Origin: Octopus sinensis
Lineage: Eukaryota
Assembly (NCBI RefSeq): GCF_006345805.1
Contig: NC_043010.1
Location: forward strand, 60,512,001 to 60,576,000
Direction of reading: 5' to 3'
DNA: 64,000 nucleotides
This document shows, piece after piece, positions 1-64,000 of the stretch. The notes under the pieces were generated by a model that made no database searches, had not been told where the DNA came from, and worked only from the letters and a program-made list of their open reading frames with translations. The position numbers were made by a program, and so were the translations under genes. How positions within the stretch are numbered: position 1 is the stretch's first letter; each line of letters starts with the position of its first letter.

Positions 1-686
1 TTCCTAATAATGACCCATACAATCTCGATGTCCACTACCATCCACACAGTAAGAAGGACATCACAATTCTGAGAGCATCTGACAAAGACACTGGAAACAA
101 TGCTTTCCTCACATATGGAATACTGAGATCCAATGATAAAAACCTGTTTACAGTGAACTCACACACTGGTGTGTTATCTTTCTCTCGCACAGTTTACCAA
201 AATGATGCAGGAACATATGAGCTGCAGTTTATAGTGAAAGACGGTGGTACTCCAGTTCAATCAGCAACAACTGCTATAATACTAACACTGTTTGTTAGTA
301 ATGATACATCTCCAATGTTGACTGCTGTGCCATTCCAGTCTGGTCACGACCTGAATATGACTTGGGTAATTATCATTGTAGCAGCAGCTGTAATACTATC
401 TGTGGCTATTGTAGTGTCCATAACACTGTGTGTTTTCAGATGTATTAATCACACAAATAACTCACCCACAACAGCAGAGAATCCCAACTTTCTCTCTCAG
501 ACTGAGATGAGACAATTACTGTATCAGACCAACAATCCTGTTGCAATAACGAGAAATGCAGAAGAGATATTTAACCGAAATCTTCAGACAATAAAATCTA
601 AAAGTCAGTTTTTTCTGGAGATGGAACAGACACCAGATGAATGGAAATTCTCAACAACACAAAGGAGACTTCCACCTGTGCCTCAG
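1..686 (+). CDS. Pcdh: Protocadherin U0, 3' part of large exon (EC6, TM, juxtamembrane tail); 5' end lies outside the window
   Basis: Open frame from position 3 (PNNDPYNLDVHY...RRLPPVPQ), essentially identical to the other copies; donor CAG|GTAAAT at 686/687. Symbol is family-level only. Confidence 0.96.
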
Positions 687-1146
687 GTAAATATTATTTT
701 AAACAATTCTATTGTTTGATAGCATTTTTGTATAACATTCATGAAGACATATTTTAAATATCTAGTTTTATTTACATGTTATGTTCTTTATATTTTCTCA
801 GTGCCCTTTTTGATAGTTTTACATTTTGCAGATGTCTTAAATTTAAAATTTCCAAATATTTTATTAAAGTAGTATCTTTGTTTTGTTTACTCCAAAATAT
901 TTTAATTTGCTTAGTATGTAAATATAATAGATCTAAAATTTTCACATACTTCATTAAATGAGTTTTCCGTTTTGTTTATCACTTCTCCAAGTTCTTTCTA
1001 TTAACTTAGTAGATCTTTAAAATTACATTATTTCTGCACATTTTAACAGCATTCCTTCCTCGAGTCTTACTGGAAACATTCTAGAATATAAATGCGAATG
1101 TTTCTTTGATTTAACATTATGTTTCACTCTGTTTTCTAATCACCAG

Positions 1147-6048: not shown

Positions 6049-8445
6049 ATGACAGCATATATTGGTCTACTGTGTCTTCTACCTTTACTGATCACCCTTG
6101 TACTGTCCATAGATATTACATACCATGTCAAAGAAGAAGGCAGACCTCACACCTATATAGGAGACATTGCTGTTGACTCCAACTTATCACACCCTCTCAC
6201 ACATCAACAACACACTCTTATTACATTTACACAACTACAAAGGACAGTCGAGAGTGGTTCTCACTTATTTAATGTCACCAACTCAGGAAAACTATACACT
6301 ACTCAAACACTGGATGCTGAGTCTCTGTGTACATACAACAAGGAATGTTCCAGAATAGTTAAAGTCGCAGTGAGGAAAGAAGAAGCATTTATGAAAATTC
6401 TCAAAATAAAAATATTAATAGAAGACATCAATGACCATTCACCAGAATTTCCACAAAATGAAGTTGAAATTGAATTTTCTGAAAGTGATAGTAAAGGAAC
6501 TAGAATCTCTCTTCTGAATGCCATTGATGAAGATATTTCCATAAAAAATTCACAAATTACATATATGATTGAGAAAAGAAAGAGAGAACCCTTTTCTCTC
6601 TCTGTCACAAAACGTGATGGTATTTTTATACCTGAACTAATTCTAGATGACAAATTAGACAGGGAAATAAAAGATTCATATATGTTGACCCTTGAAGCCA
6701 AAGATGGAGGGAACCCACCCAAAACAGCTACACTCAAGGTACATATATTTGTGACAGATGTCAATGATAACATTCCTGTATTTCCTCAGAAACTTTACAA
6801 CATTTCTATCAATAATTCACATCAAAGACATTTACCAATTCTTTCTTTAAAAGCCACAGATCAAGATTCTGGACAAAATGGAAAGGTTTCATATTATTTC
6901 AACCATAAAACATCTCGAAATATCCAGAAATATTTTGTATTAAATAAGAAAACTGGGGATTTATTTTTACATGATAATTTTCAGTTTAGTAAAAAGCAGT
7001 CTTATAAATTATTTATTGAAGCAAGAGATGGAGGCAAGCAACCCAAAAAATCTGTTGCAGCAGTTCAGATTCACGTAGTCAATAACCAAAATAATGCACC
7101 ATTGATAAATATAGATTTTGTATCTCCTTTAACTGAGAGTTCCGCAGCAGTTTCAGAAGCAAGTAAAATTGGTAGTTTTATAGCTTATGTTATGGTCACT
7201 GACACTGATAGTGGACCTAATGGTGAGGTTATCTGTGATTTAAAACATGATAAATTTAAACTTGCCAAAATAGATTCTAAAGAATATAAAATGATTGTTA
7301 AGGGTCATCTTGACAGAGAAATAAGGGACCACTATAAAGTATCTATTATGTGTCATGACATGGGGTCACCTCAACTAGAAAGTAAAAAATATTTCTCTGT
7401 CAAAGTAACTGATGTCAATGATGTAGAACCACATTTTACCAAAGAGACATTCCAATTCCTCACCTATGAAAACCAGAAAGTTGACTTCCCTATTGGCTTC
7501 ATCAATGCTACAGACCCTGATCTTGGAGATGGAGGCCAACTTACATATTCTATCATCAATGATAACAACAATGATAACATTCCTTTCCAACTGACAAAAT
7601 ATGGATTTGTTTCTACATCACAATCAATAGATCGAGAAATGAAAGACATCTATAAGTTCAAGGTTTTAGTGAAAGATAATGGAACACCTTCTCTCAATGA
7701 CACTGCCAATATTGTTATTGAGATTCTAGATAAAAATGATAATGCTCCGTATTTTACGTTTCCTAATAATGACCCTTACAATCTAGATGTCCACTACCAT
7801 CCACACAGTAAGAAGGACATCACTATTCTGAAAGCATCTGACAAAGACACTGGAAACAATGCTTTCCTCACATATGGAATACTGAGATCCAATGATAAAA
7901 ACCTGTTTACAGTGAACTCACACACTGGTGTGTTATCTTTCTCTCGCGCAGTTTACCAAAATGATGCAGGAACATATGAGCTGCAGTTTATAGTGAAAGA
8001 CGGTGGTACTCCAGTTCAATCAGCAACAACTGCTATCATACTAACACTGTTTGTTAGTAATGATACATCTCCAATGTTGACTGCTGTGCCATTCCAGTCT
8101 GGTCACGACCTGAATATGACTTGGGTAATTATCATTGTAGCAGCAGCTGTAATACTATCTGTGGCTATTGTAGTGTCCATAACACTGTGTGTTTTCAGAT
8201 GTATTAATCACACAAATAACTCACCCACAACAGCAGAGAATCCCAACTTTCTCTCTCAGACTGAGATGAGACAATTACTGTATCAGACTAACAATCCTGT
8301 TGCAATAACGAGAAATGCAGAAGAGATATTTAACCGAAATCTTCAGACAATAAAATCTAAAAGTCAGTTTTTTCTGGAGATGGAACAGACACCAGATGAA
8401 TGGAAATTCTCAACAACACAAAGGAGACTTCCACCTGTGCCTCAG
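6049..8445 (+). CDS. Pcdh: Protocadherin U1 large exon (799 aa: signal peptide, EC1-EC6, TM, juxtamembrane tail)
   Basis: Hydrophobic signal peptide; cadherin motifs (DINDHSPEF, LDRE, DVNDNIPVF, ATDQDSG, DKNDNAPYF); EC1 Cys-X5-Cys loop (LCTYNKEC) typical of protocadherins; TM WVIIIVAAAVILSVAIVVSITLCVF; acceptor at 6010/6011, donor at 8445/8446. Confidence 0.97.
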
Positions 8446-8592
8446 GTAAATATATTTGAAGAAATGCAATAATATTTCTACACATTTTAAAAGCATGCCT
8501 TTCTTGTCTTTTATCAGGAACATTCTAGATTACAAATGTTAACATTTCTTGTATTTAACATTATTCCCTCTACTTTGTGTTCTAATCAACAG

Positions 8593-12172: not shown

Positions 12173-14569
12173 ATGACAGCATATATTGGTCTACTGTGTC
12201 TTCTATATTTACTGATCACCCTTGTACTGTCCATAGATATTATATACCATGTCAATGAAGAAGGCAGTCCTCACACCTATATAGGAGACATTGCTGTTGA
12301 CTCTAACTTATCACACCCTCTCACACATCAACAACACACTCTCATTACATTTACACAACTACAAAGGACAGTCGAGAGTGGTTCTCACTTATTTAATGTC
12401 ACCAACTCAGGAAAACTATACACTACTCAGACACTGGATGCTGAGTCTCTGTGTACATACAACAAGGAATGTTCCAGAATAGTTAAGGTAGCAGTGAGGA
12501 AAGAAGAAACTTTTATGAAAATTCTCAAAATAAAAATATTAATAGAAGACATTAATGACCATTCTCCAGAATTTCCGAAGAATGAAATCACAATAAAGTT
12601 TTTAGAGAGAGATTTTAAAGGTACTAAAATCACTCTTCTAAATGCCATTGATGAAGATATTTCAATAAAAAATTCCCAAATTACATATATGATTAAGAAA
12701 AATAAAAGAGAACCATTTTCTCTCTCTGTTACAAAACAGAAGGGTATTTTCATACCTGATCTCATTCTAGAAGATAGATTAGACAGGGAACTCAAAGACT
12801 ATTATATGTTGAAACTTGAAGCTAAAGATGGAGGGAATCCACCAAAAACAGCTACACTCAAGGTACACATATCTGTGACAGATGTTAATGATAACACACC
12901 TGTATTTCCACAGGAAATCTACAACATCTCTGTAAGTAATTCACATCAAAGACATTTACCAATTCTTACTTTAAAAGCCACAGATCAAGATTCTGGAGAC
13001 AATGGAAAGATTTCTTACCATTTCAACCATAAAACATCTCGAAATATCCAGAAATATTTTGTATTAGATAAGAACACTGGAGATTTGTTTTTACATGATA
13101 ATTTTCAGTTTAATAAAAAGCAGTCTTATAAATTGTTTGTTGAAGCAAGAGATGGAGGAAATCCACCTCTAAAGTCAGTAACCAGAGTTCACATTTATGT
13201 GATTAATAACCAGAATACTGCTCCATTGATAAATATAGATTTTGTATCTCCTTTATCAGAGAGTTCAGCAGCAGTTTCAGAAGCAAGTAAAATTGGTAGT
13301 TTTATAGCTTATGTTATGGTCACTGACACTGATAGTGGACCTAATGGTGAGGTTATCTGTGATTTAAAACATGATAAATTTAAACTTGCCAAAATTGATT
13401 CTAAAGAATATAAAATGATTGTTAAGGGCCCTCTTGACAGAGAAATAAGGGACCACTATAAAGTATCTATTGTGTGTCATGACATGGGGTCACCTCAACT
13501 AGAAAGTAAAAAATATTTCTCTGTCAAAGTAACTGATGTCAATGATGTAGAACCACATTTTACCAAAGAGACATTCCAATTCCTCACCTATGAAAACCAG
13601 AAAGTTGACTTCCCTATTGGCTTCATCAATGCTACAGACCCAGATCTTGGAGATGGAGGCCAACTTACATATTCTATCATCAATGATAACAACAATGATA
13701 ACATTCCTTTCCAACTGACAAAATATGGATTTATTTCTACATCACAACCAATAGATCGAGAAATGAAAGACATCTATAAGTTCAAGGTTTTAGTGAAAGA
13801 TAATGGAACACCTTCTCTCAATGACACTGCCAATATTGTTATTGAGATTCTAGATAAAAATGATAATGCTCCGTATTTTACGTTTCCTAATAATGACCCT
13901 TACAATCTCGATGTCCACTACCATCCACACAGTAAGAAGGACATCACAATTCTGAGAGCATCTGACAAAGACACTGGAAACAATGCTTTCCTCACATATG
14001 GAATACTGAGATCCAATGATAAAAACCTGTTTACAGTGAACTCACACACTGGTGTGTTATCTTTCTCTCGCACAGTTTACCAAAATGATGCAGGAACATA
14101 TGAGCTGCAGTTTATAGTGAAAGACGGTGGTACTCCAGTTCAATCAGCAACAACTGCTATCATACTAACACTGTTTGTTAGTAATGATACATCTCCAATG
14201 TTGACTGCTGTGCCATTCCAGTCTGGTCACGACCTGAATATGACTTGGGTAATTATCATTGTAGCAGCAGCTGTAATACTATCTGTGGCTATTGTAGTGT
14301 CCATAACACTGTGTGTTTTCAGATGTATTAATCACACAAATAACTCACCCACAACAGCAGAGAATCCCAACTTTCTCTCTCAGACTGAGATGAGACAATT
14401 ACTGTATCAGACTAACAATCCTGTTGCAATAACGAGAAATGCAGAAGAGATATTTAACCGAAATCTTCAGACAATAAAATCTAAAAGTCAGTTTTTTCTG
14501 GAGATGGAACAGACACCAGATGAATGGAAATTCTCAACAACACAAAGGAGACTTCCACCTGTGCCTCAG
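12173..14569 (+). CDS. Pcdh: Protocadherin U2 large exon (799 aa)
   Basis: Six cadherin repeats plus TM as in U1; acceptor 12134/12135; donor CAG|GTAAAT 14569/14570. Confidence 0.97.
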
Positions 14570-14716
14570 GTAAATATAGTTGAAGAAATTTCATAATATT
14601 TCTACACATTTTAAAAGCATGCCTTTCTTGTCTTTTATCAGGAACACTCTAGAATACAAATGTTAACATGTCTTGTATTTAACATTATTCACTCTGCTCT
14701 GTTATCTAATCCACAG

Positions 14717-19786: not shown

Positions 19787-22183
19787 ATGACAGCATATAT
19801 TGGTCTACTGTGTCTTCTACATTTGCTGATCACCCTTGTACTGTCCATAGATATTACATACCATGTCAAGGAAGAAGGCAGACCTCACACCTATATAGGA
19901 GACATTGCTGTTGACTCCAACTTATCACACCCTCTCACACATCAACAACACACTCTCATTACATTTACACAACTACAAAGGACAGTCGAGAGTGGTTCTC
20001 ACTTATTTAATGTCACCAACTCAGGAAAACTATACACTACTCAGACACTGGATGCTGAGTCTCTGTGTACATACAGCAAGGAATGTTCCAGAATAGTTAA
20101 AGTAGCAGTGAGGAAAGAAGAAGCATTTATGAAAATATTAAGAATTAAAATATTAATTGATGACATCAATGATCATTCTCCAGAATTTCCACAGAATGAA
20201 GTTGAAATTGAATTTCTCGAAAGCCAATTTAAAGGTACTAAAATCTCACTTTTAAATGCTATTGATCAAGATATTTCAATACAGAATTCTCAAATTACAT
20301 ATATGATTGAGAAAAGAAAGAGAGAACCATTTTCTCTCTCTGTCACAAAACAAGATGGCATTTTTATACCTGAACTGACTTTAGAAGGAAAATTAAACAG
20401 GGAACTCAAAGACTCATATATCTTGACCCTGGAAGCTAAAGATGGAGGGAATCCTCCCAAAACAGCTACACTCAAGGTACACATATCTGTGACAGATGTT
20501 AATGATAACACACCTGTATTTTCACAGAAACTCTACAACATCTCTATAAGTAATTCACATCAAAGACATTTACCAATTCTTACTTTAAAAGCCACAGATA
20601 AAGATTCTGGAGACAATGGAAAGATTTCTTACCATTTCAACCATAAAACATCTCGAAATATCCAGAAATATTTTGTATTAGATAAGAAAACTGGAGATTT
20701 ATTTCTACATGATAATTTTCATTTTAGTAAAAAGGAGTCTTATAAAATATTTATTGAAGCAAGAGATGGAGGCAAGCAACCCAAAAAATCTGTTGCAGCA
20801 GTTCAGATTCACGTAGTCAATAATCAGAATAATGTTCCATTGATAAATATAGATTTTGTATCTCCTTTATCTGAGAGTTCCACAGCAGTTTCAGAAGCAA
20901 GTAAAATTGGTAGTTTTATAGCTTATGTTATGGTCACTGACAATGATAGTGGACCTAATGGTGAGGTTATCTGTGATTTAAAACATGATAAGTTTAAACT
21001 TGCCAAAATTGATTCTAAAGAATATAAAATGATTGTTAAGGGCCATCTTGACAGAGAAATAAGGGACCACTATAAAGTATCTATTGTGTGTCATGACATG
21101 GGGTCACCTCAACTAGAAAGTAAAAAATATTTCTCTGTCAAAGTAACTGATGTCAATGATGTAGAACCACATTTTACCAAAGAGACATTCCAATTCCTCA
21201 CCTATGAAAACCAGAAAGTTGACTTCCCTATTGGCTTCATCAATGCTACAGACCCTGATCTTGGAGATGGAGGCCAACTTACATATTCTATCATCAATGA
21301 TAACAACAATGATAACATTCCTTTCCAACTGACAAAATATGGATTTATTTCTACATCACAACCAATAGATCGAGAAATGAAAGACATCTATAAGTTCAAG
21401 GTTTTAGTGAAAGATAATGGAACACCTTCTCTCAATGACACTGCCAATATTGTTATTGAGATTCTAGATAAAAATGATAATGCTCCGTATTTTACGTTTC
21501 CTAATAATGACCCTTACAATCTCGATGTCCACTACCATCCACACAGTAAGAAGGACATCACAATTCTGAGAGCATCTGACAAAGACACTGGAAACAATGC
21601 TTTCCTCACATATGGAATACTGAGATCCAATGATAAAAACCTGTTTACAGTGAACTCACACACTGGTGTGTTATCTTTCTCTCGCACAGTTTACCAAAAT
21701 GATGCAGGAACATATGAGCTGCAGTTTATAGTGAAAGACGGTGGTACTCCAGTTCAATCAGCAACAACTGCTATCATACTAACACTGTTTGTTAGTAATG
21801 ATACATCTCCAATGTTGACTGCTGTGCCATTCCAGTCTGGTCACGACCTGAATATGACTTGGGTAATTATCATTGTAGCAGCAGCTGTAATACTATCTGT
21901 GGCTATTGTAGTGTCCATAACACTGTGTGTTTTCAGATGTATTAATCACACAAATAACTCACCCACAACAGCAGAGAATCCCAACTTTCTCTCTCAGACT
22001 GAGATGAGACAATTACTGTATCAGACTAACAATCCTGTTGCAATAACGAGAAATGCAGAAGAGATATTTAACCGAAATCTTCAGACAATAAAATCTAAAA
22101 GTCAGTTTTATCTGGAGATGGAACAGACACCAGATGAATGGAAATTCTCGACAACACAAAGGAGACTTCCACCTGTGCCTCAG
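19787..22183 (+). CDS. Pcdh: Protocadherin U3 large exon (799 aa)
   Basis: Six cadherin repeats plus TM; acceptor 19748/19749; donor CAG|GTAAAG 22183/22184. Confidence 0.97.
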
Positions 22184-22264
22184 GTAAAGTTTTTTCACTA
22201 ATTCAGTTGTTGAATAATAAATTTCTATGATTTATTTGAAAGCACATTTTAGATATGTAGATTA

Positions 22265-27429: not shown

Positions 27430-29828
27430 ATGACAGCATATATTGGTCTACTGTGTCTTCTACCTTTACTGATTACCCTTGTACTGTCCATAGATATTAC
27501 GTACTATGTCAAGGAAGAAGACAGTCCTCACACCTATATAGGAGACGTTGCTGTTGACTCCAACTTATCACACCCTCTCACACATCAACAACACACTCCC
27601 ATTACATTTACACAACTACAAAGGACAGTCGAGAGTGGTTCTCATTTATTTAATGTCACCAACTCAGGAAAACTCTACACTACTCAAACACTGGATGCTG
27701 AGTCTCTGTGTACATACAACAAGGAATGTTCCAGAACAGTGAAAGTAGCAGTGAGGAAAGGAAAAACGTTTATGAAGATTCTAAGGATAAAAATATTAAT
27801 AGAAGACATCAATGACCATTCTCCAGAGTTTCCACAGAATGAAGTTGAAATTGAATTTCTCGAAAGCCAATTTAAAGGGACTAAAATCTCACTTTTAAAT
27901 GCCATTGATCAAGATATTTCAATAAAGAATTCTCAAATTACATATATGATTAAGAAAAGTAAAAGAGAACCATTTTCCCTCTCAGTTGAAAAGCGATATG
28001 ATGGTGTTTTCATACCAGCTCTAGTGTTAGGAGACAAATTAGACAGGGAACTCAAAGACTCTTACATGTTGACACTGGAAGCTAAAGATGGAGGATATCC
28101 TTCAAAAACAGCTACACTCAAAGTACACATATCTGTGACAGATGTTAATGATAACACACCTGTATTTTCACAGAAACTCTATAACATCTCTATAAATAAT
28201 TCACATCAAAGACATTTACCAATTCTTACTTTAAAAGCCACAGATAAAGATTCTGGACAAAATGGAAAGATTTCTTACCATTTCAACCATAAAACATCTC
28301 GAAATATTCCGAAATATTTTGTATTAGATAAGAAAACGGGAGATCTATTTTTACATGATAATTTTCATTTTAGTAAAAAGCAATCTTATAAATTATTTAT
28401 TGAAGCACAGGATGAAGGAAATCCACCCTTAAGTTCTGTAACCAAAGTCCAGATTCTCATTATTAATAACCAGAATACTGCTCCATTGATAAATATAGAT
28501 TTTGTATCTCCTTTGTCAGAGAGCTCAGCAGCAGTTTCAGAAGACAGTGAAGTAGATAGTTTTATAGCTTATGTTATGGTCACTGACACTGATAGTGGAC
28601 CTAATGGTGAGGTTATCTGTGATTTAAAACATGATAAATTTAAACTTGCCAAAATAGATTCTAAAGAATATAAAATGATTGTTAAGGGCCATCTTGACAG
28701 AGAAATAAGGGACCACTATAAAGTATCTATTGTGTGTCATGACATGGGGTCACCTCAACTAGAAAGTAAAAAATATTTCTCTGTCAAAGTAACTGATGTC
28801 AATGATGTAGAACCACATTTTACCAAAGAGACATTCCAATTCCTCACCTATGAAAACCAGAAAGTTGACTTCCCTATTGGCTTCATCAATGCTACAGACC
28901 CTGATCTTGGAGATGGAGGCCAACTTACATATTCTATCATCAATGATAACAACAATGATAACATTCCTTTCCAACTGACAAAATATGGATTTATTTCTAC
29001 ATCACAATCAATAGATCGAGAAATGAAAGACATCTATAAGTTCCAGGTTTTAGTGAAAGATAATGGAACACCTTCTCTCAATGACACTGCCAATATTGTT
29101 ATTGAGATTCTAGATAAAAATGATAATGCTCCGTATTTTACGTTTCCTAATAATGACCCTTACAATCTCGATGTCCACTACCATCCACACAGTAAGAAGG
29201 ACATCACAATTCTGAGAGCATCTGACAAAGACACTGGAAACAATGCTTTCCTCACATATGGAATACTGAGATCCAATGATAAAAACCTGTTTACAGTGAA
29301 CTCACACACTGGTGTGTTATCTTTCTCTCGCACAGTTTACCAAAATGATGCAGGAACATATGAGCTGCAGTTTATAGTGAAAGACGGTGGTACTCCAGTT
29401 CAATCAGCAACAACTGCTATCATACTAACACTGTTTGTTAGTAATGATACATCTCCAATGTTGACTGCTGTGCCATTCCAGTCTGGTCACGACCTGAATA
29501 TGACTTGGGTAATTATCATTGTAGCAGCAGCTGTAATACTATCTGTGGCTATTGTAGTGTCCATAACACTGTGTGTTTTCAGATGTATTAATCACACAAT
29601 AACTCACCCACAACAGCAGAGAATCCCAACTTTCTCTCTCAGACTGAGATGAGACAATTACTGTATCAGACTAACAATCCTGTTGCAATAACGAGAAATG
29701 CAGAAGAGATATTTAACCGAAATCTTCAGACAATAAAATCTAAAAGTCAGTTTTTCCTGGAGATGGAACAGACACCAGATGAGTGGAAATTCTCAACAAC
29801 ACAAAGGAGACTTCCACCTGTGCCTCAG
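27430..29828 (+). pseudogene. Pcdh: Protocadherin U4 large exon with a 1-nt deletion just after the TM (truncated-tail gene, pseudogene, or assembly error)
   Basis: CACACAATAAC at about 29593-29603 versus CACACAAATAAC in all other copies. Exon length from ATG is 2399 nt instead of 2400; the frame ends at 29652 (...INHTITHPQQQRIPTFSLRLR*). Ectodomain and TM are intact. Confidence 0.85.
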
Positions 29829-34682: not shown

Positions 34683-37079
34683 ATGACAGCATATATTGGT
34701 CTACTGTGTCTTCTACCTTTACTGATCACCCTTGTACTGTCCATAGATATTACATACCATGTCAAGGAAGAAGGCAGACCTCACACCTATATAGGAGACA
34801 TTGCTGTTGACTCCAACTTATCACACCCTCTCACACATCAACAACACACTCTCATTACATTTACACAACTACAAAGGACAGTCGAGAGTGGTTCTCACTT
34901 ATTTAATGTCACCAACTCAGGAAAACTCTACACTACTCAGACACTGGATGCTGAGTCTCTGTGTACATACAACAAGGAATGTTCCAGAACAGTTAAAGTA
35001 GCAGTGAGGAAAGGAAAAACGTTTATGAAGATTCTAAAAATTAAAATATTAATAGAAGACATCAATGACCATTCACCAGAATTTCCACAGAATGAAGTTG
35101 AAATTGAATTTTCTGAGAAAGACAGAAAAGGGGAAATGGTCTCCCTTCTAAATGCCATTGATCAGGATATTTCAGTCAAAAATTCTCAAATTACATATAT
35201 GGTTAAGAAAAGTAAAAGAGAACCATTTTCTCTCTCTGTCACAAAACACAAAGGTATTTTCACACCTGAAATAATTCTTGAAGATAAGTTAGACAGGGAA
35301 GTAAAAGACTCATACATGTTAACCTTGGAAGCTAAAGATGGAGGGAATCCTCCCAAAACAGCTTCACTCAAGGTACACATATCTGTAACTGATGTCAATG
35401 ATAACACACCTGTATTTTCACACGACCTGTACAACACATCTGTAAGTAATTCACATCAAAGACATTTACCAATTCTTACTTTAAAAGCCACAGATAAAGA
35501 TTCTGGAGACAATGGAAAGATTTCTTTTCATTTCAACCATAAAACATCTCGAAATATCCAGAAATATTTTGTATTAGATAAGAAAACTGGAGATTTATTT
35601 CTACATGATAATTTTCATTTTAGTAAAAAGCAGTCTTATAAGTTATTTATTGAAGCAAGAGATGGAGGCAAGCCACCCAAAAAATCTGTTGCAGCAGTTC
35701 AGATTCATGTAGTCAATAACCAAAATAATGCACCATTGATAAATATAGATTTTGTATCTCCTTTATCAGGGAGCTCAGCAGCAGTTTCTGAAGACAGTGA
35801 AGTAGATAGTTTTATAGCTTATGTTATGGTCACTGACACTGATAGTGGACCTAATGGTGAGGTTATCTGTGATTTAAAACATGATAAGTTTAAACTTGCC
35901 AAAATAGATTCTAAAGAATATAAAATGATTGTTAAGGGCCATCTTGACAGAGAAATAAGGGACCACTATAAAGTATCTATTGTGTGTCATGATATGGGGT
36001 CACCTCAACTAGAAAGTAAAAAATATTTCTCTGTCAAAGTAACTGATGTCAATGATGTAGAACCACATTTTACCAAAGAGACATTCCAATTCCTCACCTA
36101 TGAAAACCAGAAAGTTGACTTCCCTATTGGCTTCATCAATGCTACAGACCCAGATCTTGGAGATGGAGGCCAACTTACATATTCTATCATCAATGATAAC
36201 AACAATGATAACATTCCTTTCCAACTGACAAAATATGGATTTATTTCTACATCACAATCAATAGATCGAGAAATGAAAGACATCTATAAGTTCCAGGTTT
36301 TAGTGAAAGATAATGGAACACCTTCTCTCAATGACACTGCCAATATTGTTATTGAGATTCTAGATAAAAATGATAATGCTCCGTATTTTACGTTTCCTAA
36401 TAATGACCCTTACAATCTCGATGTCCACTACCATCCACACAGTAAGAAGGACATCACAATTCTGAGAGCATCTGACAAAGACACTGGAAACAATGCTTTC
36501 CTCACATATGGAATACTGAGATCCAATGATAAAAACCTGTTTACAGTGAACTCACACACTGGTGTGTTATCTTTCTCTCGCACAGTTTACCAAAATGATG
36601 CAGGAACATATGAGCTGCAGTTTATAGTGAAAGACGGTGGTACTCCAGTTCAATCAGCAACAACTGCTATCATACTAACACTGTTTGTTAGTAATGATAC
36701 ATCTCCAATGTTGACTGCTGTGCCATTCCAGTCTGGTCACGACCTGAATATGACTTGGGTAATTATCATTGTAGCAGCAGCTGTAATACTATCTGTGGCT
36801 ATTGTAGTGTCCATAACACTGTGTGTTTTCAGATGTATTAATCACACAAATAACTCACCCACAACAGCAGAGAATCCCAACTTTCTCTCTCAGACTGAGA
36901 TGAGACAATTACTGTATCAGACCAACAATCCTGTTGCAATAACGAGAAATGCAGAAGAGATATTTAACCGAAATCTTCAGACAATAAAATCTAAAAGTCA
37001 GTTTTTTCTGGAGATGGAACAGACACCAGATGAATGGAAATTCTCAACAACACAAAGGAGACTTCCACCTGTGCCTCAG
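34683..37079 (+). CDS. Pcdh: Protocadherin U5 large exon (799 aa)
   Basis: Six cadherin repeats plus TM; acceptor 34647/34648; donor 37079/37080. Confidence 0.97.
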
Positions 37080-37443
37080 GTAAATATATTTTGAAATGAT
37101 CCAGTTGTTGCATCACATTTTTTTACAATATTCCTGAAAACGTATGCTATACATCTTGTTTTATTTAAATGTCATATCCCTTTCTTATATTTTTTCCTTA
37201 AAAGATGAAAGATGTTTCATAATTTTACTTTTTACTAGTAATACCCATTTAAAATTTGCATATAAGTATTTCATTGAACAATATTTTCATTTTATTTAAT
37301 TGTGAATTCCAGTTTATTTTTATTAATTAAAAAATTTAATTATAACATTTCAACTCCATAAAAGTATTCCTTTCTTTGTCTTACCAAGCACATTCTAGAA
37401 ATGAAATGTGAATGTTTCTTCTGCTTTTTTTTCTAATCAACAG

Positions 37444-40869: not shown

Positions 40870-42434
40870 CTATTCAGATGACAATAAATATAATTTAGTA
40901 TAATTTTGTTATTTAAGATATTTTGTGTGATATATAAAATGATGATAGTGTCATGTTTTATTAAAATATATTAATTCTGACAATCGATGATTGTAGATTT
41001 TTTTTTTTTTTGAGAATTGATCAGAAATAATATCATCGTCTTTCTTCAAACTACAGACATCATATTATAGTTGTTCCTTACTAAATGTAACATAGCAAAA
41101 GTATTTTACATGTATAAAATCTACATATTATATGAAAATAGGGATTAAATTAATTTGATAAGAAAGAGATCCACATATTTTATGAAGATAATTATATTTT
41201 TCCATCATCAACATTCACTCCACCATTTTCTAATCTCAATCATTCTATCTAGTAAAAGATATCTTTGTGAAATATTTCCACATAATTTTATAAACTATTC
41301 TGTCATCATCATTTAACATCTGTTTTCTATGCTGGCATGGGTGGGTAGGTTACTTTGACTGATCTCCCCATTTCAGATATGCTCTCCAAGCATGGATCTT
41401 TCCATGACCCTTTGTTGTCTCATAGCTAATTGATATTCTTCCCCCTCCATTGTACCTCATGTCTTATTTGCATATACATGTTCAGCTAGGTCAATGCTAT
41501 TGAAGAGACAGGCTTGTAGAGGTTTGTCCAGTTTTGTTATCAAAGTAAATACCTTCCATCTTATCTTCATACTCCTTGAGATTTCAACATCCATGCCTGT
41601 GACACATTTCCATTTCATACACCAAATAGATCTACTCCTTTAGCTCCTCAAGTTTTTTTGCTTCCCACCTCTATTCAGTCTTGTCCTTCATTTTCAGACG
41701 GCATGGATTTTGTTTTCATGGAGTTCATTTTCAGGTTTTTTTTTTTTTTTTCGTGTTTTCATGTAGTTCATTCTTCAAAAAAAAACTATATGAGTTTATT
41801 TCAATATCTGTAGACAATATAGTGAAATAAAAGGTGAATAGACATGCAAAAATATTTACTATCTGAATTTGTTTTTAATTTATTGCGGTCTCTGCTAAAA
41901 CACATCTTGCAAAAAAATGTATCTTTATTGTATTTGCAAGATATTTATTTCCATTATAAATATATAAAGATATATTATCCTCTCTTCCAACCTCTGTAGT
42001 GCTTGTGCCATGGCAAAATGTACCCAGCACTCTCTGTAAGTAAACCATAAGCTTTATTTATGTTATTTACATTTGACGGATATTTGTCCTCATCTTCTTT
42101 CTGGTTAACACGTTTCAGCTGGTATACCCCCCAGCCTTCATCAGGTGTCTTGAGGAAAGAAGGCTGGAGATTATATCAGCCAAATCGTTGTATTAACAAC
42201 AAAGATGGGGAAAAATATCTGTCAAATGTAAATAATGTACATAATTTCTCATCTCTTAAATATCATCATCATCATCATCATCGTTTAGCGTCCGCTTTCC
42301 ATGCTAGCATGGGTTGGACGGGTCAACTGGGGTCTGTGAAGCTGGAAGGCTTCGTCAGACCCAGTCAGATCTGGCAGTGTTTCTACGGCTGGATGCCCTT
42401 CCTAACGCCAACCACTCCGCGAGTGTAGTGGGTG

Positions 42435-43215
42435 TTTTTTACGTGCCACCTGCACAGGTGCCAGACAGAGCTGGCGAACGGATGGTGCTTTTACGTGTCA
42501 CCGGCACGGGGCCAGGCGATGCTGGCAACGGACACGAACGGATGGTGCTTTTACGTGCCACCGACACGGGGCCAGACAGAGCTGGCAACCGGCCACGAAA
42601 GGACAGTGCTTTTACGTGTCACCGGCACGGGGGCCAGCCGAGGCTGGCAACGGACGCGAACGGATGGTGCTTTTATGTGCCACCGACACAGTTGCCAGAC
42701 AGAGCTGGCAAACGGCCACGAACGGACGGTGCTTTTACGTGTCACCGGCACGGTGCCAGGCGAGGCTGGCAACGAACACGAACGGATGGTGCTTTTACGT
42801 GCCACCGACACGGGGCCAGACAGAGCTGGCAACCGGCCACGAACGGACAGTGCTTTTACGTGTCACCGGCATGGGGGCCAGCCGAGGCTGGCAACAGACG
42901 CGAACGGATGGTGCTTTTACGTGCCACCGACACAGTTGCCAGACAGAGCTGGCAAACGGCCACGAACGGATGGTGCTTTTACGTGCCACCGACACGGGGC
43001 CAGACAGAGCTGGCAAACGGCCACGAACGGACGGTGCTTTTACGTGTCACCGGCACGGTGCCAGGCGAGGCTGGCAACGAACACGAATGGATGGTGCTTT
43101 TACGTGCCACCGACACGGGGCCAGGCAGAGCTGGCAAACGGCCACGAGCGAATGGTGCTTTTACGTATCACCGGCACGGGTGCCAGACGAGGCTGACAGC
43201 GGACACGAACGGATG
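42435..43215. repeat. ~60-bp minisatellite (about 13 units) in the LINE 3'UTR
   Basis: Unit GAACGGATGGTGCTTTTACGTG(T/C)CACCG(G/A)CAC...GCCAG...GCTGGCAA; two alternating unit types. Confidence 0.95.
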
Positions 43216-43263
43216 GGTCACTTAACCCCTGCTTTCTGATATATGATTTGATTTTGATTGTTC

Positions 43264-45239: not shown

Positions 45240-45747
45240 TTCCCTGCTACCACCAATATAGAACTGTATAAACCATAAGCTGTTAAGAATATAGATTTAG
45301 AAATTATGGCAAGTGAAGTGTGTTCCCCTGACTACGTGTAGGAAGGTAGCCACTCCAACTGGTTCCATTAACTTCCGTAGAAAAATACTTGACTGAACTC
45401 TATCAATATATATTTTTAATTCAACATTGAACTTCTAGCAGTTCTATATTGAAACTATCGTGGAATGTCAGGTACTTTGGTCTTTACTGTTCCCTGTTTT
45501 TTCTTTCCTGTCATCCATTCGGCCACCACATCACACCCAAGATGTAACTGTCATCAGAAGAGAAAAGTTGACACATTTTGAGTAGTTCTGATGAATCTAA
45601 AGGTATATATTTGGAGATAGAAATAATGTTTAGACTGCAGTTTTTGCTTTTATGCCTTATTTTGTTTTAATTCTACATAAGCTTTAAATATTTTTGTTGT
45701 CTTTTATAGCAATTTCTCCTGCTGAAATGTGATGAAGAATTCCAGAC

Positions 45748-48147
45748 ATGACAGCATATATTGGTCTACTGTGTCTTCTACATTTACTGATCACCCTTGT
45801 ACTGTCCATAGATATTACATACCATGTCAATGAAGAAGGCAGACCTCACACCTACATAGGAGAAGTTGCTGTTGACTCCAACTTATCACATCCTCTCACA
45901 CATCAACAACACACTCTCATTACATTTACACAACTACAAAGGACAGTCGAGAGTGGTTCTCACTTATTTAATGTCACCAACTCAGGAAAACTATACACTA
46001 CTCAGACACTGGATGCTGAGTCTCTGTGTACGTACAACAGGGAATGTTCCAGAACAGTTAAAGTAGCAGTGAGGAAAGAAGAAGCATTTATGAAAATTCT
46101 CAAAATAAAAATATTAATAGAAGACATCAATGACCATTCTCCAGAATTTCCACAGAATGAAGTTGAAATTGAATTTTCTGAAATAGGTAGAAAAGGAGAT
46201 AAAATACCTCTTCTAAATGCCATTGATAAAGATATTTCAATACAAAATTCTCAAATTACATATATGATTAAGAAAAGTAAAAGAGAACCATTTTCTCTCT
46301 CAGTTGAAAAGCGTTATGATGGTGTTTACATACCTACTCTAGTTCTAGGAGATAAATTAGACAGGGAACTTAAAGACTCATATATGTTGACCCTGGAAGC
46401 TAAAGATGGAGGGAACCCTCCCAAAACAGCTACACTCAAGGTACACATATCTGTAACAGATGTCAATGATAACGTACCTGTATTTTCCCAGAAAGTCTAC
46501 AACATCTCAATAAATAATTCACATCAAAGACATTTACCAATTCTTACTTTAAAAGCCACAGATCAAGATTCTGGAGACAATGGAAAGATTTCTTATCATT
46601 TCAACCATAAAACATCTCAAAATGTCCAGAAATATTTTGTTTTAGATAAGAAAACTGGAGATTTATTTTTAAATGATAATTTTCAGGTTAGTAAAAAGCA
46701 GTCTTATAAATTATTTATTGAAGCACGAGATGGAGGAAAACCTCCCCTTAGTTCTTTAACCAAAGTCCAGATTCATGTAGTCAATAATCAGAATAATGCT
46801 CCATTAATTAATATAGATTTTGTATCTCCTTTATCAGAGAGCTCAGCAGCAGTTTCAGAAGCAAGTAAAATTGGTAGTTTTATAGCTTATGTTATGGTCA
46901 CTGACACTGATAGTGGACCTAATGGTGAGGTTATCTGTGATTTAAAACATGATAAGTTTAAACTTGCCAAAATAGATTCTAAAGAATATAAAATGATTGT
47001 TAAGGGCCATCTTGACAGAGAAATAAGGGACCACTATAAAGTGTCTATTATGTGTCATGACATGGGGTCACCTCAACTAGAAAGTAAAAAATATTTCTCT
47101 GTTAAAGTAACTGATGTCAATGATGTAGAGCCACATTTTACCAAAGAGACATTCCAATTCCTCACCTATGAAAACCAGAAAGTTGACTTCCCTATTGGCT
47201 TCATCAATGCTACAGACCCAGATCTTGGAGATGGAGGCCAACTTACATATTCTATCATCAATGATAACAACAATGATAACATTCCTTTCCAACTGACAAA
47301 ATATGGATTTATTTCTACATCACAATCAATAGATCGAGAAATGAAAGACATCTATAAGTTCCAGGTTTTAGTGAAAGATAATGGAACACCTTCTCTCAAT
47401 GACACTGCCAATATTGTTATTGAGATTCTAGATAAAAATGATAATGCTCCGTATTTTACGTTTCCTAATAATGACCCTTACAATCTCGATGTCCACTACC
47501 ATCCACACAGTAAGAAGGACATCACAATTCTGAGAGCATCTGACAAAGACACTGGAAACAATGCTTTCCTCACATATGGAATACTGAGATCCAATGATAA
47601 AAACCTGTTTACAGTGAACTCACACACTGGTGTGTTATCTTTCTCTCGCACAGTTTACCAAAATGATGCAGGAACATATGAGCTGCAGTTTATAGTGAAA
47701 GACGGTGGTACTCCAGTTCAATCAGCAACAACTGCTATCATACTAACACTGTTTGTTAGTAATGATACATCTCCAATGTTGACTGCTGTGCCATTCCAGT
47801 CTGGTCACGACCTGAATATGACTTGGGTAATTATCATTGTAGCAGCAGCTGTAATACTATCTGTGGCTATTGTAGTGTCCATAACACTGTGTGTTTTCAG
47901 ATGTATTAATCACACAAATAACTCACCCACAACAGCAGAGAATCCCAACTTTCTCTCTCAGACTGAGATGAGACAATTACTGTATCAGACTAACAATCCT
48001 GTTGCAATAACGAGAAATGCAGAAGAGATATTTAACCGAAATCTTCAGACAATAAAATCTAAAAGTCAGTTTTTTCTGGAGATGGAACAGACACCAGATG
48101 AGTGGAAATTCTCAACAACACAAAGGAGACTTCCACCTGTGCCTCAG
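45748..48147 (+). CDS. Pcdh: Protocadherin U6 large exon (800 aa)
   Basis: Six cadherin repeats plus TM; acceptor 45709/45710; donor 48147/48148. Confidence 0.97.
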
Positions 48148-48374
48148 GTAAATATTATTTTATGTCTGATACCCTTTTGATTTTAAATACAAAAGTATGT
48201 TATCCATTATTCACATGTTCAAATATATTCATAAACTATCAACTTCAGATTCTCATACATATGAAAATTTCTTACTTTAATCAAAATTGATAGTTAATCT
48301 GTGACTTTGCATTAATTAATCATTATTGTCTTAATGATAGCAGAGCAGTTATAATATTTAGTATCACCTTCATA

Positions 48375-54120: not shown

Positions 54121-56520
54121 ATGACAGCATATATTGGTCTACTGTGTCTTCTACATTTACTGATCACCCTTGTACTGTCCATAGATATTATATACCATGT
54201 CAATGAAGAAGGCAGTCCTCACACCTATATTGGAGACATTGCTGTTGACTCCAACTTATCACACCCTCTCACACATCAACAACACACTCTCATTACATTT
54301 ACACAACTACAAAGGACAGTCGAGAGTGGTTCTCACTTATTTAATGTCACCAACTCAGGAAAACTATACACTACTCAAACACTGGATGCTGAGTCTCTGT
54401 GTACATACAACAAGGAATGTTCCAGAATAGTTAAAGTAGCAGTGAGGAAAGAAGAAACATTTATGAAAATATTAAAAATAAGAATATTAATAGATGACAT
54501 TAATGACCATTCTCCAGAATTTCTAAAGAATGAAGTTCAAATTGAATTTTCTGAGCGGGAGAGTAAAGGTACTAAAATTCCTCTTCCAAATGCCATTGAT
54601 AAAGATATTTCAATAAAGAATTCTCAAATAACATATATGATCAAGAAAAATAAAAGAGAACCATTTTCTATCTCAATCAAAAAAAGACATGATGGTGTCT
54701 CCATACCTGAATTAATATTGGAAGATAAATTAGACAGAGAACTCAAAGACAAATATATATTGACTTTGGAAGCTAAAGATGGAGGCTACCCTCCCAAAAC
54801 AGCTACACTCAAGGTACACATATCTGTGACAGATGTCAATGATAATACACCTGCATTTTCACAGAAACTCTACAACATCTCTATAAGTAATTCACATCAA
54901 AGACATTTACCAATTCTTACTTTAAAAGCCACAGATCAAGATTCAGGAGACAATGGAAAGATTTCTTACCATTTCAACCATAAAACATCTCAAAATGTCC
55001 TGACATATTTTGTATTAAATGAGAAGTCTGGAGATCTATTTTTACATGATAATTTTCATTTTAGTAAAAAGCAGTCTTATAAATTATTTATTGAAGCACG
55101 AGATGGAGGAAATCCACCCTTAAGTTCTGTAACTAAAGTCCAGATTTACATTATTAATAACCAGAATAATGCTCCATTGATTAATATAGATTTTGTATCT
55201 CCTTTATCAGAGAGTTCAGCAGCTGTTTCAGAAGCAAGTAAAATTGGTAGTTTTATAGCTTATGTTATGGTCACTGACACTGATAGTGGACCTAATGGTG
55301 AGGTTATCTGTGATTTAAAACATGATAAATTTAAACTTGCCAAAATAGATTCTAAAGAATATAAAATGATTGTTAAGGGCCATCTTGACAGAGAAATAAG
55401 GGACCACTATAAAGTATCTATTGTGTGTCATGACATGGGGTCACCTCAACTAGAAAGTAAAAAATATTTCTCTGTCAAAGTAACTGATGTCAATGATGTA
55501 GAACCACATTTTACCAAAGAGACATTCCAATTCCTCACCTATGAAAACCAGAAAGTTGACTTCCCTATTGGCTTCATCAACGCTACAGACCCTGATCTTG
55601 GAGATGGAGGCCAACTTACATATTCTATCATCAATGATAACAACAATGATAACATTCCTTTCCAACTGACAAAATATGGATTCATTTCTACATCACAATC
55701 AATAGATCGAGAAATGAAAGACATCTATAAGTTCAAGGTTTTAGTGAAAGATAATGGAACACCTTCTCTCAATGACACTGCCAATATTGTTATTGAGATT
55801 CTAGATAAAAATGATAATGCTCCGTATTTTACATTTCCTAATAATGACCCTTACAATCTAGATGTCCACTACCATCCACACAGTAAGAAGGACATCACAA
55901 TTCTGAGAGCATCTGACAAAGACACTGGAAACAATGCTTTCCTCACATATGGAATACTGAGATCCAATGATAAAAACCTGTTTACAGTGAACTCACACAC
56001 TGGTGTGTTATCTTTCTCTCGCACAGTTTACCAAAATGATGCAGGAACATATGAGCTGCAGTTTATAGTGAAAGACGGTGGTACTCCAGTTCAATCAGCA
56101 ACAACTGCTATCATACTAACACTGTTTGTTAGTAATGATACATCTCCAATGTTGACTGCTGTGCCATTCCAGTCTGGTCACGACCTGAATATGACTTGGG
56201 TAATTATCATTGTAGCAGCAGCTGTAATACTATCTGTGGCTATTGTAGTGTCCATAACACTGTGTGTTTTCAGATGTATTAATCACACAAATAACTCACC
56301 CACAACAGCAGAGAATCCCAACTTTCTCTCTCAGACTGAGATGAGACAATTACTGTATCAGACTAACAATCCTGTTGCAATAACGAGAAATGCAGAAGAG
56401 ATATTTAACCGAAATCTTCAGACAATAAAATCTAAAAGTCAGTTTTTCCTGGAGATGGAACAGACACCGGATGAGTGGAAATTCTCCACAACACAAAGGA
56501 GACTTCCACCTGTGCCTCAG
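54121..56520 (+). CDS. Pcdh: Protocadherin U7 large exon (800 aa)
   Basis: Six cadherin repeats plus TM; acceptor 54082/54083; donor 56520/56521. Confidence 0.97.
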
Positions 56521-56838
56521 GTAAATATTATTTTGGGTAATAGATGTTTTTGTTTTATTTCTTATTATAAAAATATTCTATCCATTATTGACATATGTAC
56601 AATTATTGCTACAGAAAACTCAACTTCAGTCCCTCTTGTGTACAAATTTTTTTATGTCTTTAGTTAATATTTTTTGTATAGCTTTTGCTGTTTGAATTGA
56701 TTATTTTGTATAATGTTACAGATATCAAAACAGTTACAGTATTCATTATAGAAATGCAATACACTTTATATACAAACAAATAATTAGGAGTGATCTAAAC
56801 TTGTATTGATATAAGATTCCTCTTTCTATAATCCACAG

Positions 56839-58375: not shown

Positions 58376-58618
58376 CTTCTCTTATTTGATGTGTTTGTGT
58401 GACACAGACAACATTGCAGTAATTTCCTATTGGATGAGAGAGATTTTCTATATTTCTTTCAATATTGAAAGTGAGGCTGATAGCTTTTTTCTTTGTTCAT
58501 CATACACACAATTGTGTGTGTGTGTGTGGAGGACATAGAGTTGTAACTAGCACACACCAGCATCTGGCTAACATCTCACCTCCCACTACATACAGCAACT
58601 GTCACACTATTATATCAG

Positions 58619-63586: not shown

Positions 63587-64000
63587 ATGACAGCATATAT
63601 TGGTCTACTGTGTCTTCTACATTTACTGATCACCCTTGTACTGTCCATAGATATTACATACCATGTCAAGGAAGAAGACAGACCTCACACCTATATTGGA
63701 GACATTGCTGTTGACTCCAACTTATCACACCCTCTCACACATCAACAACACACTCTCATTACATTTACACAACTACAAAGGACAGTCGAGAGTGGTTCTC
63801 ACTTATTTAATGTCACCAACTCAGGAAAACTATACACTACTCAAACACTGGACGCTGAGTCTCTGTGTACCTACAACAAGGAATGTTCCAGAATAGTTAA
63901 AGTAGCTGTGAGAAAAGGACAAACCTTTATGAAAATCCTTAAAATAAAAATATTGATACAGGACATCAATGACCATTCTCCAGAATTTCCACAGAATGAA
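63587..64000 (+). CDS. Pcdh: Protocadherin U8, start of large exon (signal peptide and EC1); continues beyond the window
   Basis: MTAYIGLLCLLHLLITLVLSIDITYHVKEEDRP...RKGQTFMKILKIKILIQDINDHSPEFPQNE; acceptor at 63548/63549. Confidence 0.95.
   Translation, partial: MTAYIGLLCLLHLLITLVLSIDITYHVKEEDRPHTYIGDIAVDSNLSHPLTHQQHTLITFTQLQRTVESGSHLFNVTNSGKLYTTQTLDAESLCTYNKECSRIVKVAVRKGQTFMKILKIKILIQDINDHSPEFPQNE

Follow-up and report, generated by a model that had tools for sequence, protein, structure and literature searches.

How do protocadherins encoded side by side in the octopus genome recognise each other or keep apart? This question is raised by a 64,000-nucleotide stretch of Octopus sinensis DNA (contig NC_043010.1, positions 60,512,001 to 60,576,000, forward strand; the window below), which is part of an array of ∼27 protocadherin units in tandem. 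The protocadherin expansion in octopuses is independent of that in vertebrates, and to my knowledge nobody has shown how octopus protocadherins recognise each other. An earlier note, made from the letters of the window, had remarked that its units come in two types, with opposite charges in a short motif of the first extracellular cadherin repeat (EC1) and in another of the fourth (EC4), and had read this as compensatory change defining two recognition subclasses. I report here that the two motifs are coupled throughout the array, that this coupling does not follow ancestry, that it recurs in other octopods, and that both motifs are located in elements homologous to those of the EC1:EC4 interface of solved protocadherin dimers. 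On balance, selection probably maintains an electrostatic EC1:EC4 contact at these sites, which, judging from sequence, would divide the array into classes that do not cross-bind. The covariation, its independence of ancestry and its location have stood; a prediction made for one unit and the scheme of two classes have not.

Coupling of two short islands across the array

Reading 256 kb around the window gave 27 units, and four copies from 3.4-kb loci on unplaced contig sequence bring the number to 31. The window itself holds the tail of U0, the seven complete units U1–U7 and the start of U8. The two types differ by two islands of 6–15 nt each, separated by 780 nt (residues are numbered as in U1). 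In the EC1 island, codons 111–112 are GGA AAA in the KD type and GAA GAA in the EA type; in the EC4 island, codons 371–375 are GAC AGT GAA GTA GAT and GCA AGT AAA ATT GGT respectively, with six changes within 13 nt. The motif positions given earlier were right within 3 nt: VRKEE[A/T]F starts at 6370 (U1), 12494 (U2), 20108 (U3), 46069 (U6) and 54442 (U7), and SEASKIGSF at 7153, 13277, 20891, 46855 and 55228 in the same units, while VRKGKTF spans 27751–27771 (U4) and 35004–35024 (U5), SEDSEVDSF 28537–28563 (U4) and 35787–35813 (U5), and VRKGQTF 63908–63928 (U8).

KD units, with RKGKTF and EDSEVD, are U0, U4, U5, U10, U11, U14, U16–U23 and U25, and Um1 combines RENKRF with EDSEVD. EA units, with RKEE[A/T]F and EASKIG, are U1–U3, U6, U7, U9, U13, U15 and U24. 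Two units are mixed, namely U8 (RKGQTF and EASKIG) and U12 (RKGTTF and ESSKIG), and among the four unplaced-contig copies three are EA and one is KD. Lys112 and Asp371 (of EDSEVD) go together without exception, both being present in 17 of the 31 copies and neither in the other 14; in these 14, which carry EASKIG or ESSKIG, residue 112 is Glu, Gln or Thr. The naive probability of this association is p = 3.8e-9 for the 31 copies, and p = 7.6e-7 for the 24 copies outside the earlier note; in the seven units alone, a chance coincidence would be expected 1 time in 21. The covariation is genuine, holding perfectly in all 31 copies, beyond the window too.

The large exons of the window and their islands are as follows.

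3..719, + strand: U0 large exon, 3' end (EC6, transmembrane segment, start of cytoplasmic tail); its 5' part, upstream of the window, has RKGKTF and EDSEVD
6049..8472, + strand: U1 large exon (signal peptide, EC1–EC6, transmembrane segment), type EA (RKEEAF and EASKIG)
6379..6384, + strand: U1 EC1 island, codons 111–112 GAA GAA (Glu-Glu), F-G hairpin tip
7159..7173, + strand: U1 EC4 island, codons 371–375 GCA AGT AAA ATT GGT (ASKIG), A'-B loop just before Phe377
12173..14596, + strand: U2 large exon, type EA (RKEETF and EASKIG)
12503..12508, + strand: U2 EC1 island, Glu-Glu
13283..13297, + strand: U2 EC4 island, ASKIG
19787..22201, + strand: U3 large exon, type EA (RKEEAF and EASKIG)
20117..20122, + strand: U3 EC1 island, Glu-Glu
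20897..20911, + strand: U3 EC4 island, ASKIG
27430..29652, + strand: U4 large exon, type KD (RKGKTF and EDSEVD); a 1-nt deletion near exon nt 2166 breaks the frame
27760..27765, + strand: U4 EC1 island, GGA AAA (Gly-Lys)
28543..28557, + strand: U4 EC4 island, GAC AGT GAA GTA GAT (DSEVD)
34683..37094, + strand: U5 large exon, type KD (RKGKTF and EDSEVD)
35013..35018, + strand: U5 EC1 island, Gly-Lys
35793..35807, + strand: U5 EC4 island, DSEVD
45748..48180, + strand: U6 large exon, type EA (RKEEAF and EASKIG)
46078..46083, + strand: U6 EC1 island, Glu-Glu
46861..46875, + strand: U6 EC4 island, ASKIG
54121..56667, + strand: U7 large exon, type EA (RKEETF and EASKIG)
54451..54456, + strand: U7 EC1 island, Glu-Glu
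55234..55248, + strand: U7 EC4 island, ASKIG
63587..64000, + strand: U8 large exon, 5' part only; EC1 RKGQTF, with EC4 (EASKIG) 1.1 kb past the window end
63917..63922, + strand: U8 EC1 island, GGA CAA (Gly-Gln), where Lys is lost without an acid being gained

From its RKGQTF motif, U8 had been expected to carry an EDSEVD-type EC4. Its EC4 in fact reads EASKIGSF, and the same holds for its counterpart in O. vulgaris, whereas the refined rule, Lys112 if and only if Asp371, still fits this unit. Nor are there just two classes, as EC1 islands with Gly-Gln, Gly-Thr and Gly-Glu also exist, all with an EASKIG-type EC4; what decides is whether residue 112 is Lys, in combination with Asp371, and not the contrast of RKEE with RKGK. 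I considered the possibility that the mixed units U8 and U12 are pseudogenes, with one and 12 frameshifts respectively, but rejected it, since indels are common array-wide and the U8 type is kept in O. vulgaris. The KD state is taken to be the older one, because the combination of Lys112 with Asp371 is found in the outgroup units and in most of the wider family.

The kinship of U4 and U5 had been offered as another source of the pattern. Shared ancestry is not the explanation, and a simple two-clade history was rejected on four lines of evidence. The first is linkage disequilibrium (LD) between paralogues, which drops to the level of independent sites (mean r2 ∼0.05) within 30–100 nt. Among 315 informative alleles in 24 core units, only island sites reach r2 >= 0.4 with either type, and r2 is 0.71 between the two islands, against at most 0.56 for all other pairs more than 600 nt apart; the islands correlate with each other, and not with sites between or beside them. 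Second, all four gametes are found between the EC4 island and common polymorphisms at nt 1092, lying 20 nt upstream of it, and at nt 1157, lying 33 nt downstream, and between the EC1 island and common polymorphisms 5–25 nt away. Third, the types remain mixed in a maximum-likelihood tree built from the 759 nt that lie between the islands; this tree requires 8–10 switches, the same as with shuffled labels, and contains well-supported sisters of different type (U6–U21, U20–U24, and U7 with the pair U17, U18). Lys112 and Asp371 switch together on this tree, in 5 of 5 cases on supported branches and 10 of 10 overall. Fourth, the 3' non-coding flanks do not group by type, with three of the six reciprocal-best pairs being cross-type. 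A direct illustration is given by U6 and U21, where the EC4 island forms a lone patch of six differences within ∼200 nt of identity, and has therefore moved or been replaced on a shared background. The tabulation across the cluster with trees, proposed earlier as a check, thus shows coupled types, and EC1/EC4 combinations that are not free.

These observations are best explained by an array in which short-tract gene conversion keeps shuffling and homogenising the units, while two small islands escape it and stay coupled. EC1 and EC4 are otherwise uniform, as stated before, with a nucleotide diversity (pi) of 0.01–0.04 for EC1 before its island and EC4 after its island, and pi is 0.1–0.24 over unit nt 300–1140; since diversity is low outside and high between them, the islands form the two edges of a variable cassette. 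Gene conversion has reportedly been described in vertebrate protocadherin clusters by Noonan et al. in 2004 (Genome Res 14:354). Vertebrate clusters and the octopus array are alike in that homogenisation affects the membrane-proximal and C-terminal parts, whereas the recognition domains at the N terminus stay diverse; that study is not known to describe small coupled islands maintained across the boundary between the two.

A second long-range coupling was observed, between EC2 and EC3. Where the EC2 loop has one extra codon (xR[Y/H]DGV), the EC3 F-G loop is always PL[S/T][S/T]VTKV (12 of 12 units), and where it is short (TKxxGIF), the EC3 loop is always P[K/L]K[S/T]V (12 of 12 units), with r2 of up to 1.0 at ∼420 nt. 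The segments concerned are exon nt 541–621 and 961–1035 of each unit (27970–28053 and 28393–28467 in U4). This coupling may come partly from real clades of the middle segment. The EC1 island with the EC4 island, and EC2 with EC3, account for the only long-range LD in the array, and the midpoints all fall at the EC2/EC3 junction, which gives the anti-diagonal expected of an antiparallel dimer.

Position of the islands in the protocadherin fold

By their sequence, the units are delta2-like protocadherins. Each is a single open frame of ∼2.4 kb, whose product has a signal peptide, then six cadherin repeats and one transmembrane segment, and corresponds to one large exon with its end near PQVNI; public gene models carry ∼60 residues more. 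Pfam identifies five Cadherin stretches and an N-terminal Cadherin_2 domain (E 7e-74) in the unit protein, and the hydrophobic transmembrane stretch WVIIIVAAAVILSVAIVVSITLCVF follows EC6. The best phmmer match among solved structures is the delta2 protocadherin pcdh8.1 from Xenopus (6vg1, E 3.7e-87), followed by gamma, delta2 and alpha protocadherins, with the exception of one CELSR1 chain at rank 2; the top 41 Foldseek matches are all EC1–4, EC1–5 or EC1–6 structures of protocadherins. The disulfide loop of protocadherins is present, as the Cys-x5-Cys of EC1 (LCTYNKEC; C73 and C79 in mature numbering) is invariant in 67 cephalopod sequences. The linkers EC1–2, EC2–3 and EC4–5 are canonical (DxNDxxP).

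In the crystal structure of Xenopus pcdh8.1, Leu86 and Phe344 lie at the centre of the EC1:EC4 interface, and all delta protocadherins are stated to keep this contact, which joins the G strand of EC1 to the B strand of EC4 (PMC7082078). In the phmmer alignment to 6vg1, which is ungapped at the key points, these residues correspond to Ile117 and Phe377, the latter (F356 in mature numbering) being invariant. The alignment therefore suggests that the octopus units keep the hydrophobic G-strand/B-strand pair of the antiparallel "forearm handshake" dimer. The EC1 island lies 5–6 residues before Ile117, and the EC4 island 2–6 residues before Phe377. The two central residues are located in U4 as follows.

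27778..27780, + strand: U4 Ile117, EC1 G strand, aligned with Leu86 of Xenopus pcdh8.1 (phmmer alignment; PMC7082078)
28561..28563, + strand: U4 Phe (Phe377 in U1 numbering), where the EC4 B strand starts, aligned with Phe344 of Xenopus pcdh8.1 (phmmer alignment; AlphaFold2 model; PMC7082078)

An AlphaFold2 model of U1 residues 22–475 (predicted local distance difference test, pLDDT, 82) places residues 111–112 in a two-residue F-G hairpin turn, and residues 370–376 in an A'-B loop leading into the B strand that starts at Phe377. Cooper et al. (PMC5115871) count two hairpins, F-G of EC1 and A-B of EC4, among the features common to every solved protocadherin trans interface, and according to Nicoludis et al. 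(PMC5001838) the beta6-beta7 loop of EC1 touches EC4 in clustered protocadherins. Alignment and model agree in placing both sites in the elements that form the EC1:EC4 contact of solved delta and clustered dimers. The EC1–EC4 covariation, seen in array LD and in family-wide mutual information, and the EC2–EC3 covariation, seen in array LD, come without an intramolecular contact to explain them, as would be the case for such a dimer.

In the proposed arrangement, the top of EC1 of one molecule would be level with the bottom of EC4 of its partner. In an antiparallel dimer of this kind the EC1 G strand and the EC4 B strand run the same way, so that the residues preceding both central residues should lie on the same side; this geometry would bring the EC1 hairpin tip (111–112) and the EC4 loop (371–375) to face each other beside the hydrophobic Ile117:Phe377 pair. 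In the KD type, Lys112 would be set against Asp371, Glu373 and Asp375, and in the EA type Glu111 and Glu112 against Ala371, Lys373 and Gly375, the acids being gone and Lys373 available for pairing. Each type would be self-complementary in a homophilic dimer, while a KD–EA dimer would have like charges at both of its EC1:EC4 contacts. The swap would then split the array into classes without cross-binding, on top of the diversity of EC2–EC3. Loss of Lys112 without the gain of an acid (Gln, Thr or Gly-Glu) would be tolerated only with a non-acidic EC4; that neutral or Gly-Glu EC1 islands occur solely in such copies fits the avoidance of a Lys-Lys clash.

A close known counterpart is found in pcdh9 and pcdh11, where Lys356 has been proposed to pair with an acidic residue 90 (Harrison et al., 2020, PMC7082078); the acid precedes the central EC1 Leu94 by four residues, and the Lys precedes the central EC4 Leu by three. 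These are the same two spots as in the octopus units, a few residues before the central B-strand and G-strand residues; the octopus F-G loop is two residues longer, however, making the positions neighbours rather than strict equivalents, and the pcdh9/pcdh11 pair was derived by sequence alignment onto pcdh1, not as a covariation. In vertebrate clustered protocadherins, the EC1:EC4 specificity pairs 86:369 (gammaB) and 79:340 (gammaA8/A9) favour the homodimer and disfavour heterodimers (Goodman et al., 2016, PMC5106212). As in the octopus, tandem paralogues there show covariation of an EC4 residue with one located close to the G strand or the F-G loop of EC1. The Goodman pairs are mostly size-complementary and use other EC4 positions (B strand, D-E region), whereas the octopus pair would be electrostatic, with the F-G hairpin tip set against the A'-B loop, and belongs to cephalopod genes closest in sequence to delta2 protocadherins.

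Delta1 and delta2 protocadherins are set apart by a charge swap in an EC2:EC3 salt bridge (Cooper et al., 2016, PMC5115871). There too the charge is reversed on both sides, which was proposed to restore homophilic binding and to prevent binding to the other class, but the case concerns EC2:EC3 of ancient subfamilies, in contrast to EC1:EC4 of ∼95%-identical neighbours in a single array. Lastly, the antiparallel EC1–EC4 dimer was predicted by sequence coevolution (Nicoludis et al., 2015/2016, PMC5001838; bioRxiv 10.1101/493106). Since EC1 and EC4 cannot touch within a rod-like monomer, covariation between them is taken as evidence for an intermolecular contact. That prediction used thousands of vertebrate sequences and global statistical models, whereas the present one uses LD in ∼30 paralogues together with ∼120 cephalopod proteins.

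Other octopods and the wider cephalopod family

For O. vulgaris, I read 12 units from the DNA of an independent assembly rather than from protein models, because most of the models start at Met115, just after the EC1 island. Most models of the array (four loci on OX597827.1) start with MKILK... and are without the signal peptide and most of EC1, while the frame upstream is open; the Met115 starts are likely an annotation truncation. RKGKTF is found with EDSEVD in four units, and EASKIG with RKEETF in five, with RKGETF in one and with RKGQTF in one. This last unit sits between two EA units, exactly as U8 does, and the combination seen in U8 is therefore real. The Lys112/Asp371 rule holds in the 12 O. 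vulgaris units, in three Argonauta units and in close-subfamily proteins of four species.

Argonauta hians, from another octopod family, also possesses both types, as RKGKTF with EDSELD and as R[K/R]EE[I/T]F with EASKVN. In a tree of the C-terminal 330 residues, all 23 Argonauta proteins form one clade apart from Octopus, with both types in each. When Octopus and Argonauta DNA are compared, the 30–60 nt that flank the EC4 island on each side differ by lineage in both types, while the bases of the island itself are type-specific in both lineages (GAC..GAA versus GCA..AAA). The dimorphism is either older than the Octopus/Argonauta split and resistant to concerted evolution, or has arisen twice, and by either route its presence in both lineages points to selection on the pair.

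For a test across the family, 120 cephalopod protocadherins were aligned, and a tree was built without the motif columns. The charge of residue 112 changes in 19 phylogenetically independent pairs, and the acidic state of residue 371 shifts in the compensating direction in 12–13 of these and never in the opposite one (sign test, p = 2-5e-4). Restricting the count to well-supported branches leaves 5–6 compensating against 0–1 (p ∼0.03). A blind scan of 449 positions returned 371 (0 same : 13 opposite), 373 and 375 as the top three opposite-sign partners of residue 112. Most of the independent-pair signal comes from the close subfamily (9:0). In the more distant set, residue 371 is basic in none of 30 proteins with a basic residue 112, versus 6 of 21 with an acidic one (p = 0.003), with two more where residue 112 is uncharged, and more distant paralogues follow the same charge logic with other residues (E112 with K371; K111 with E371).

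The top pairs of the cephalopod family by mutual information with average product correction (MI-APC) are EC1–EC4 pairs. These comprise a charge swap between K119:E412 (95 sequences) and E119:K/R412 (16 sequences), K105 with E412 and M/I382 versus D/E105 with K412 and K382, and R65:D356 versus Q65:N356. The EC1 residues concerned (65, 105 and 119) lie on the F and G strands, and those of EC4 (356, 382 and 412) on its A, B and D-E elements. The sequences with E119 may all belong to one clade.

Alternative explanations, surroundings of the units, and implications

A selection-maintained contact that divides the array into non-cross-binding classes is, on this evidence, the reading I favour with some confidence. 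A more specific version, held more tentatively and falling just short of what I would call probable, is that residue 112 with residues 371, 373 and 375 forms a two-site lock, whose dimorphism has been kept in octopodids and argonautids despite gene conversion because it divides the array into mutually non-binding classes.

Several points weigh against these readings. In vertebrate clustered protocadherins, EC1:EC4 is described as mainly a non-selective affinity contact (PMC5001838). Canonical three-calcium linkers, which would keep EC1–EC4 straight, are not found throughout, as the EC3–4 linker is without the DxNDN acids (NNQNNAP, NQQNNAP or NQHNNPP) in all 120 cephalopod protocadherins, where the xEx and DRE acids of EC3 are replaced too. 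This linker is located in U1 as follows.

7078–7101: EC3–EC4 linker of U1 (VNNQNNAP)

This sequence suggests a calcium-poor and possibly flexible EC3–EC4 joint in the middle of the presumed recognition region, for which reason EC4 may sit unlike in the vertebrate templates. The AlphaFold2 monomer is bent, and its domain arrangement is unreliable (predicted template modelling score, pTM, 0.51; root-mean-square deviation ∼50 Å to crystal structures), so that only its secondary structure was used. Trees of mosaic paralogues being unreliable, the apparently independent switches in the array reflect reshuffling and not separate mutations. In plain MI-APC (121 sequences), the pair 112–371 ranks 1423 of 98,346, within the top 1.4% only. 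Among 74 more distant cephalopod protocadherins, the pair count is 5:0 with 371 not the top-ranked position, and Asp371 is kept in 9 of the 21 proteins of the distant set that have an acid at 112. The coupling is suggestive beyond the close subfamily, and I do not claim it as a family-wide law. Lastly, frameshifting 1–2-nt indels are present in 11 of the 27 units (U4, U8, U10–U12, U15, U18, U19, U22, U23 and U25), that of U4 being near window position 29595 and those of the other ten units beyond the window. The adjacent units U10, U11 and U12 have 13, 5 and 12 respectively, and U8 has one. Given the little substitution divergence, these frameshifts look more like errors left in a poorly polished long-read assembly than like decay, with pseudogenes being possible.

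The alternative that survives best, though I regard it as unlikely, is that the islands touch, but that the contact only preserves affinity after one side has drifted, with KD and EA separated, if at all, by EC2–EC3. The mostly affinity role of EC1:EC4 in vertebrates (PMC5001838) speaks for it, and the tolerance of intermediate EC1 islands (Gln, Thr, Gly-Glu) alongside EASKIG suggests a soft constraint. However, the dimorphism is stable in both Octopus and Argonauta amid homogenised surroundings, where both states are maintained, which is not expected of a one-off repair. Moreover, a two-sided reversal of sign is what blocks heterophilic pairing between delta1 and delta2 protocadherins (PMC5115871).

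It is quite unlikely that the coupling is indirect, with both islands answering to a third partner that they have in common, to a cis or lattice contact, or to a change that the acidic A'-B loop causes at the neighbouring EC4–EC5 calcium site and that is compensated at some other place. In its favour, residue 371 comes immediately after Glu370, a conserved calcium-binding residue, and the non-canonical EC3–EC4 linker would allow a geometry unlike that of the templates. Against this, the charge changes are strictly opposite in sign, as a direct electrostatic pair predicts, the positions map beside two residues that touch in every solved delta-protocadherin trans dimer, and the other top covarying pairs are also EC1–EC4 pairs on the expected faces.

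A neutral history, in which two ancestral genes differed at both islands and left relics that gene conversion never crossed, for instance because dense mismatches stop heteroduplex extension, seems to me very unlikely. The EC4 island is indeed mismatch-dense (6 of 13 nt), both islands lie at cassette edges, where conversion tracts from the conserved flanks would end, and the true duplication genealogy is unrecoverable from shuffled sequence. The EC1 island, however, has only 2–3 mismatches in 6 nt, no denser than its freely shuffled neighbours (pi 0.12–0.24), and such relics would not account for the isolated U6/U21 patch or for 3' flanks unstructured by type. Lys112 has in addition been replaced by Glu, Gln and Thr solely in copies with a non-acidic EC4, and distant paralogues reach the same charge logic with other residues. 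An artefact of collapsed or chimeric tandem copies can be dismissed as extremely improbable: although 1-nt indels in many units show that the region is imperfectly polished, mis-assembly would destroy an association rather than make one, and the independent O. vulgaris assembly has the same pairs, RKGQTF with EASKIG included, with coupled pairs present in Argonauta as well.

The units are separated by several kb of repeats, including a reverse-transcriptase open reading frame (ORF) and a 61-bp satellite. Between U5 and U6, a 540-amino-acid ORF (43264–44886, − strand) encodes a reverse-transcriptase domain (RVT_1, E 3e-32), with a weak match to a PHD-like zinc finger (E 5e-4, below the Pfam cut-off), and a further ORF is located upstream of it (44802–45296, − strand); together they are a non-LTR retrotransposon insertion. 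Nearby, at 42475–43216, the G+C-rich 61-bp tandem repeat is present in ∼12 copies and is open in three frames, which accounts for three overlapping "ORFs" at 42308–43239. The same intergenic sequence is found 3' of U1 and U7 (10072–10548 and 58572–59063), with a spurious ORF containing a poly-Gln run; the 3' flanks of these two units are close mutual matches, a trace of block duplication inside the array. Homology between units ends 50–130 nt upstream of the ATG, meaning that a shared promoter element, if any, is very short or elsewhere, while downstream it reaches kilobases. A parallel run of units is present on two unplaced contigs (42.6 kb and 26.5 kb; C11541 and C11250), with four loci (L005, L008, L011 and L026) whose units are 95–97.5% identical to U1, U2, U4 and U5. 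These contigs are probably an alternative haplotype with one unit fewer, in which the copy nearest to the KD unit U4 is EA at both islands.

Among the papers searched, none dealt with EC1/EC4 contacts or covariation in cephalopod protocadherins. Compensatory trans pairs in protocadherins, an EC1:EC4 contact predicted from covariation, and gene conversion in protocadherin clusters are known already; what is new is the cephalopod instance, with sequence-level evidence for an antiparallel EC1–4 interface in octopus protocadherins. If selection does maintain the contact proposed here, LD among tandem paralogues would serve as a map of contacts, and more generally the long-range correlations that survive in a gene-converting tandem array would point to interface contacts. 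The two islands also name two short swappable patches, whose exchange should switch the binding class. If the lock exists as proposed, the independently expanded cephalopod protocadherins would use the same antiparallel EC1–4 handshake as those of vertebrates, with EC1:EC4 serving for specificity.

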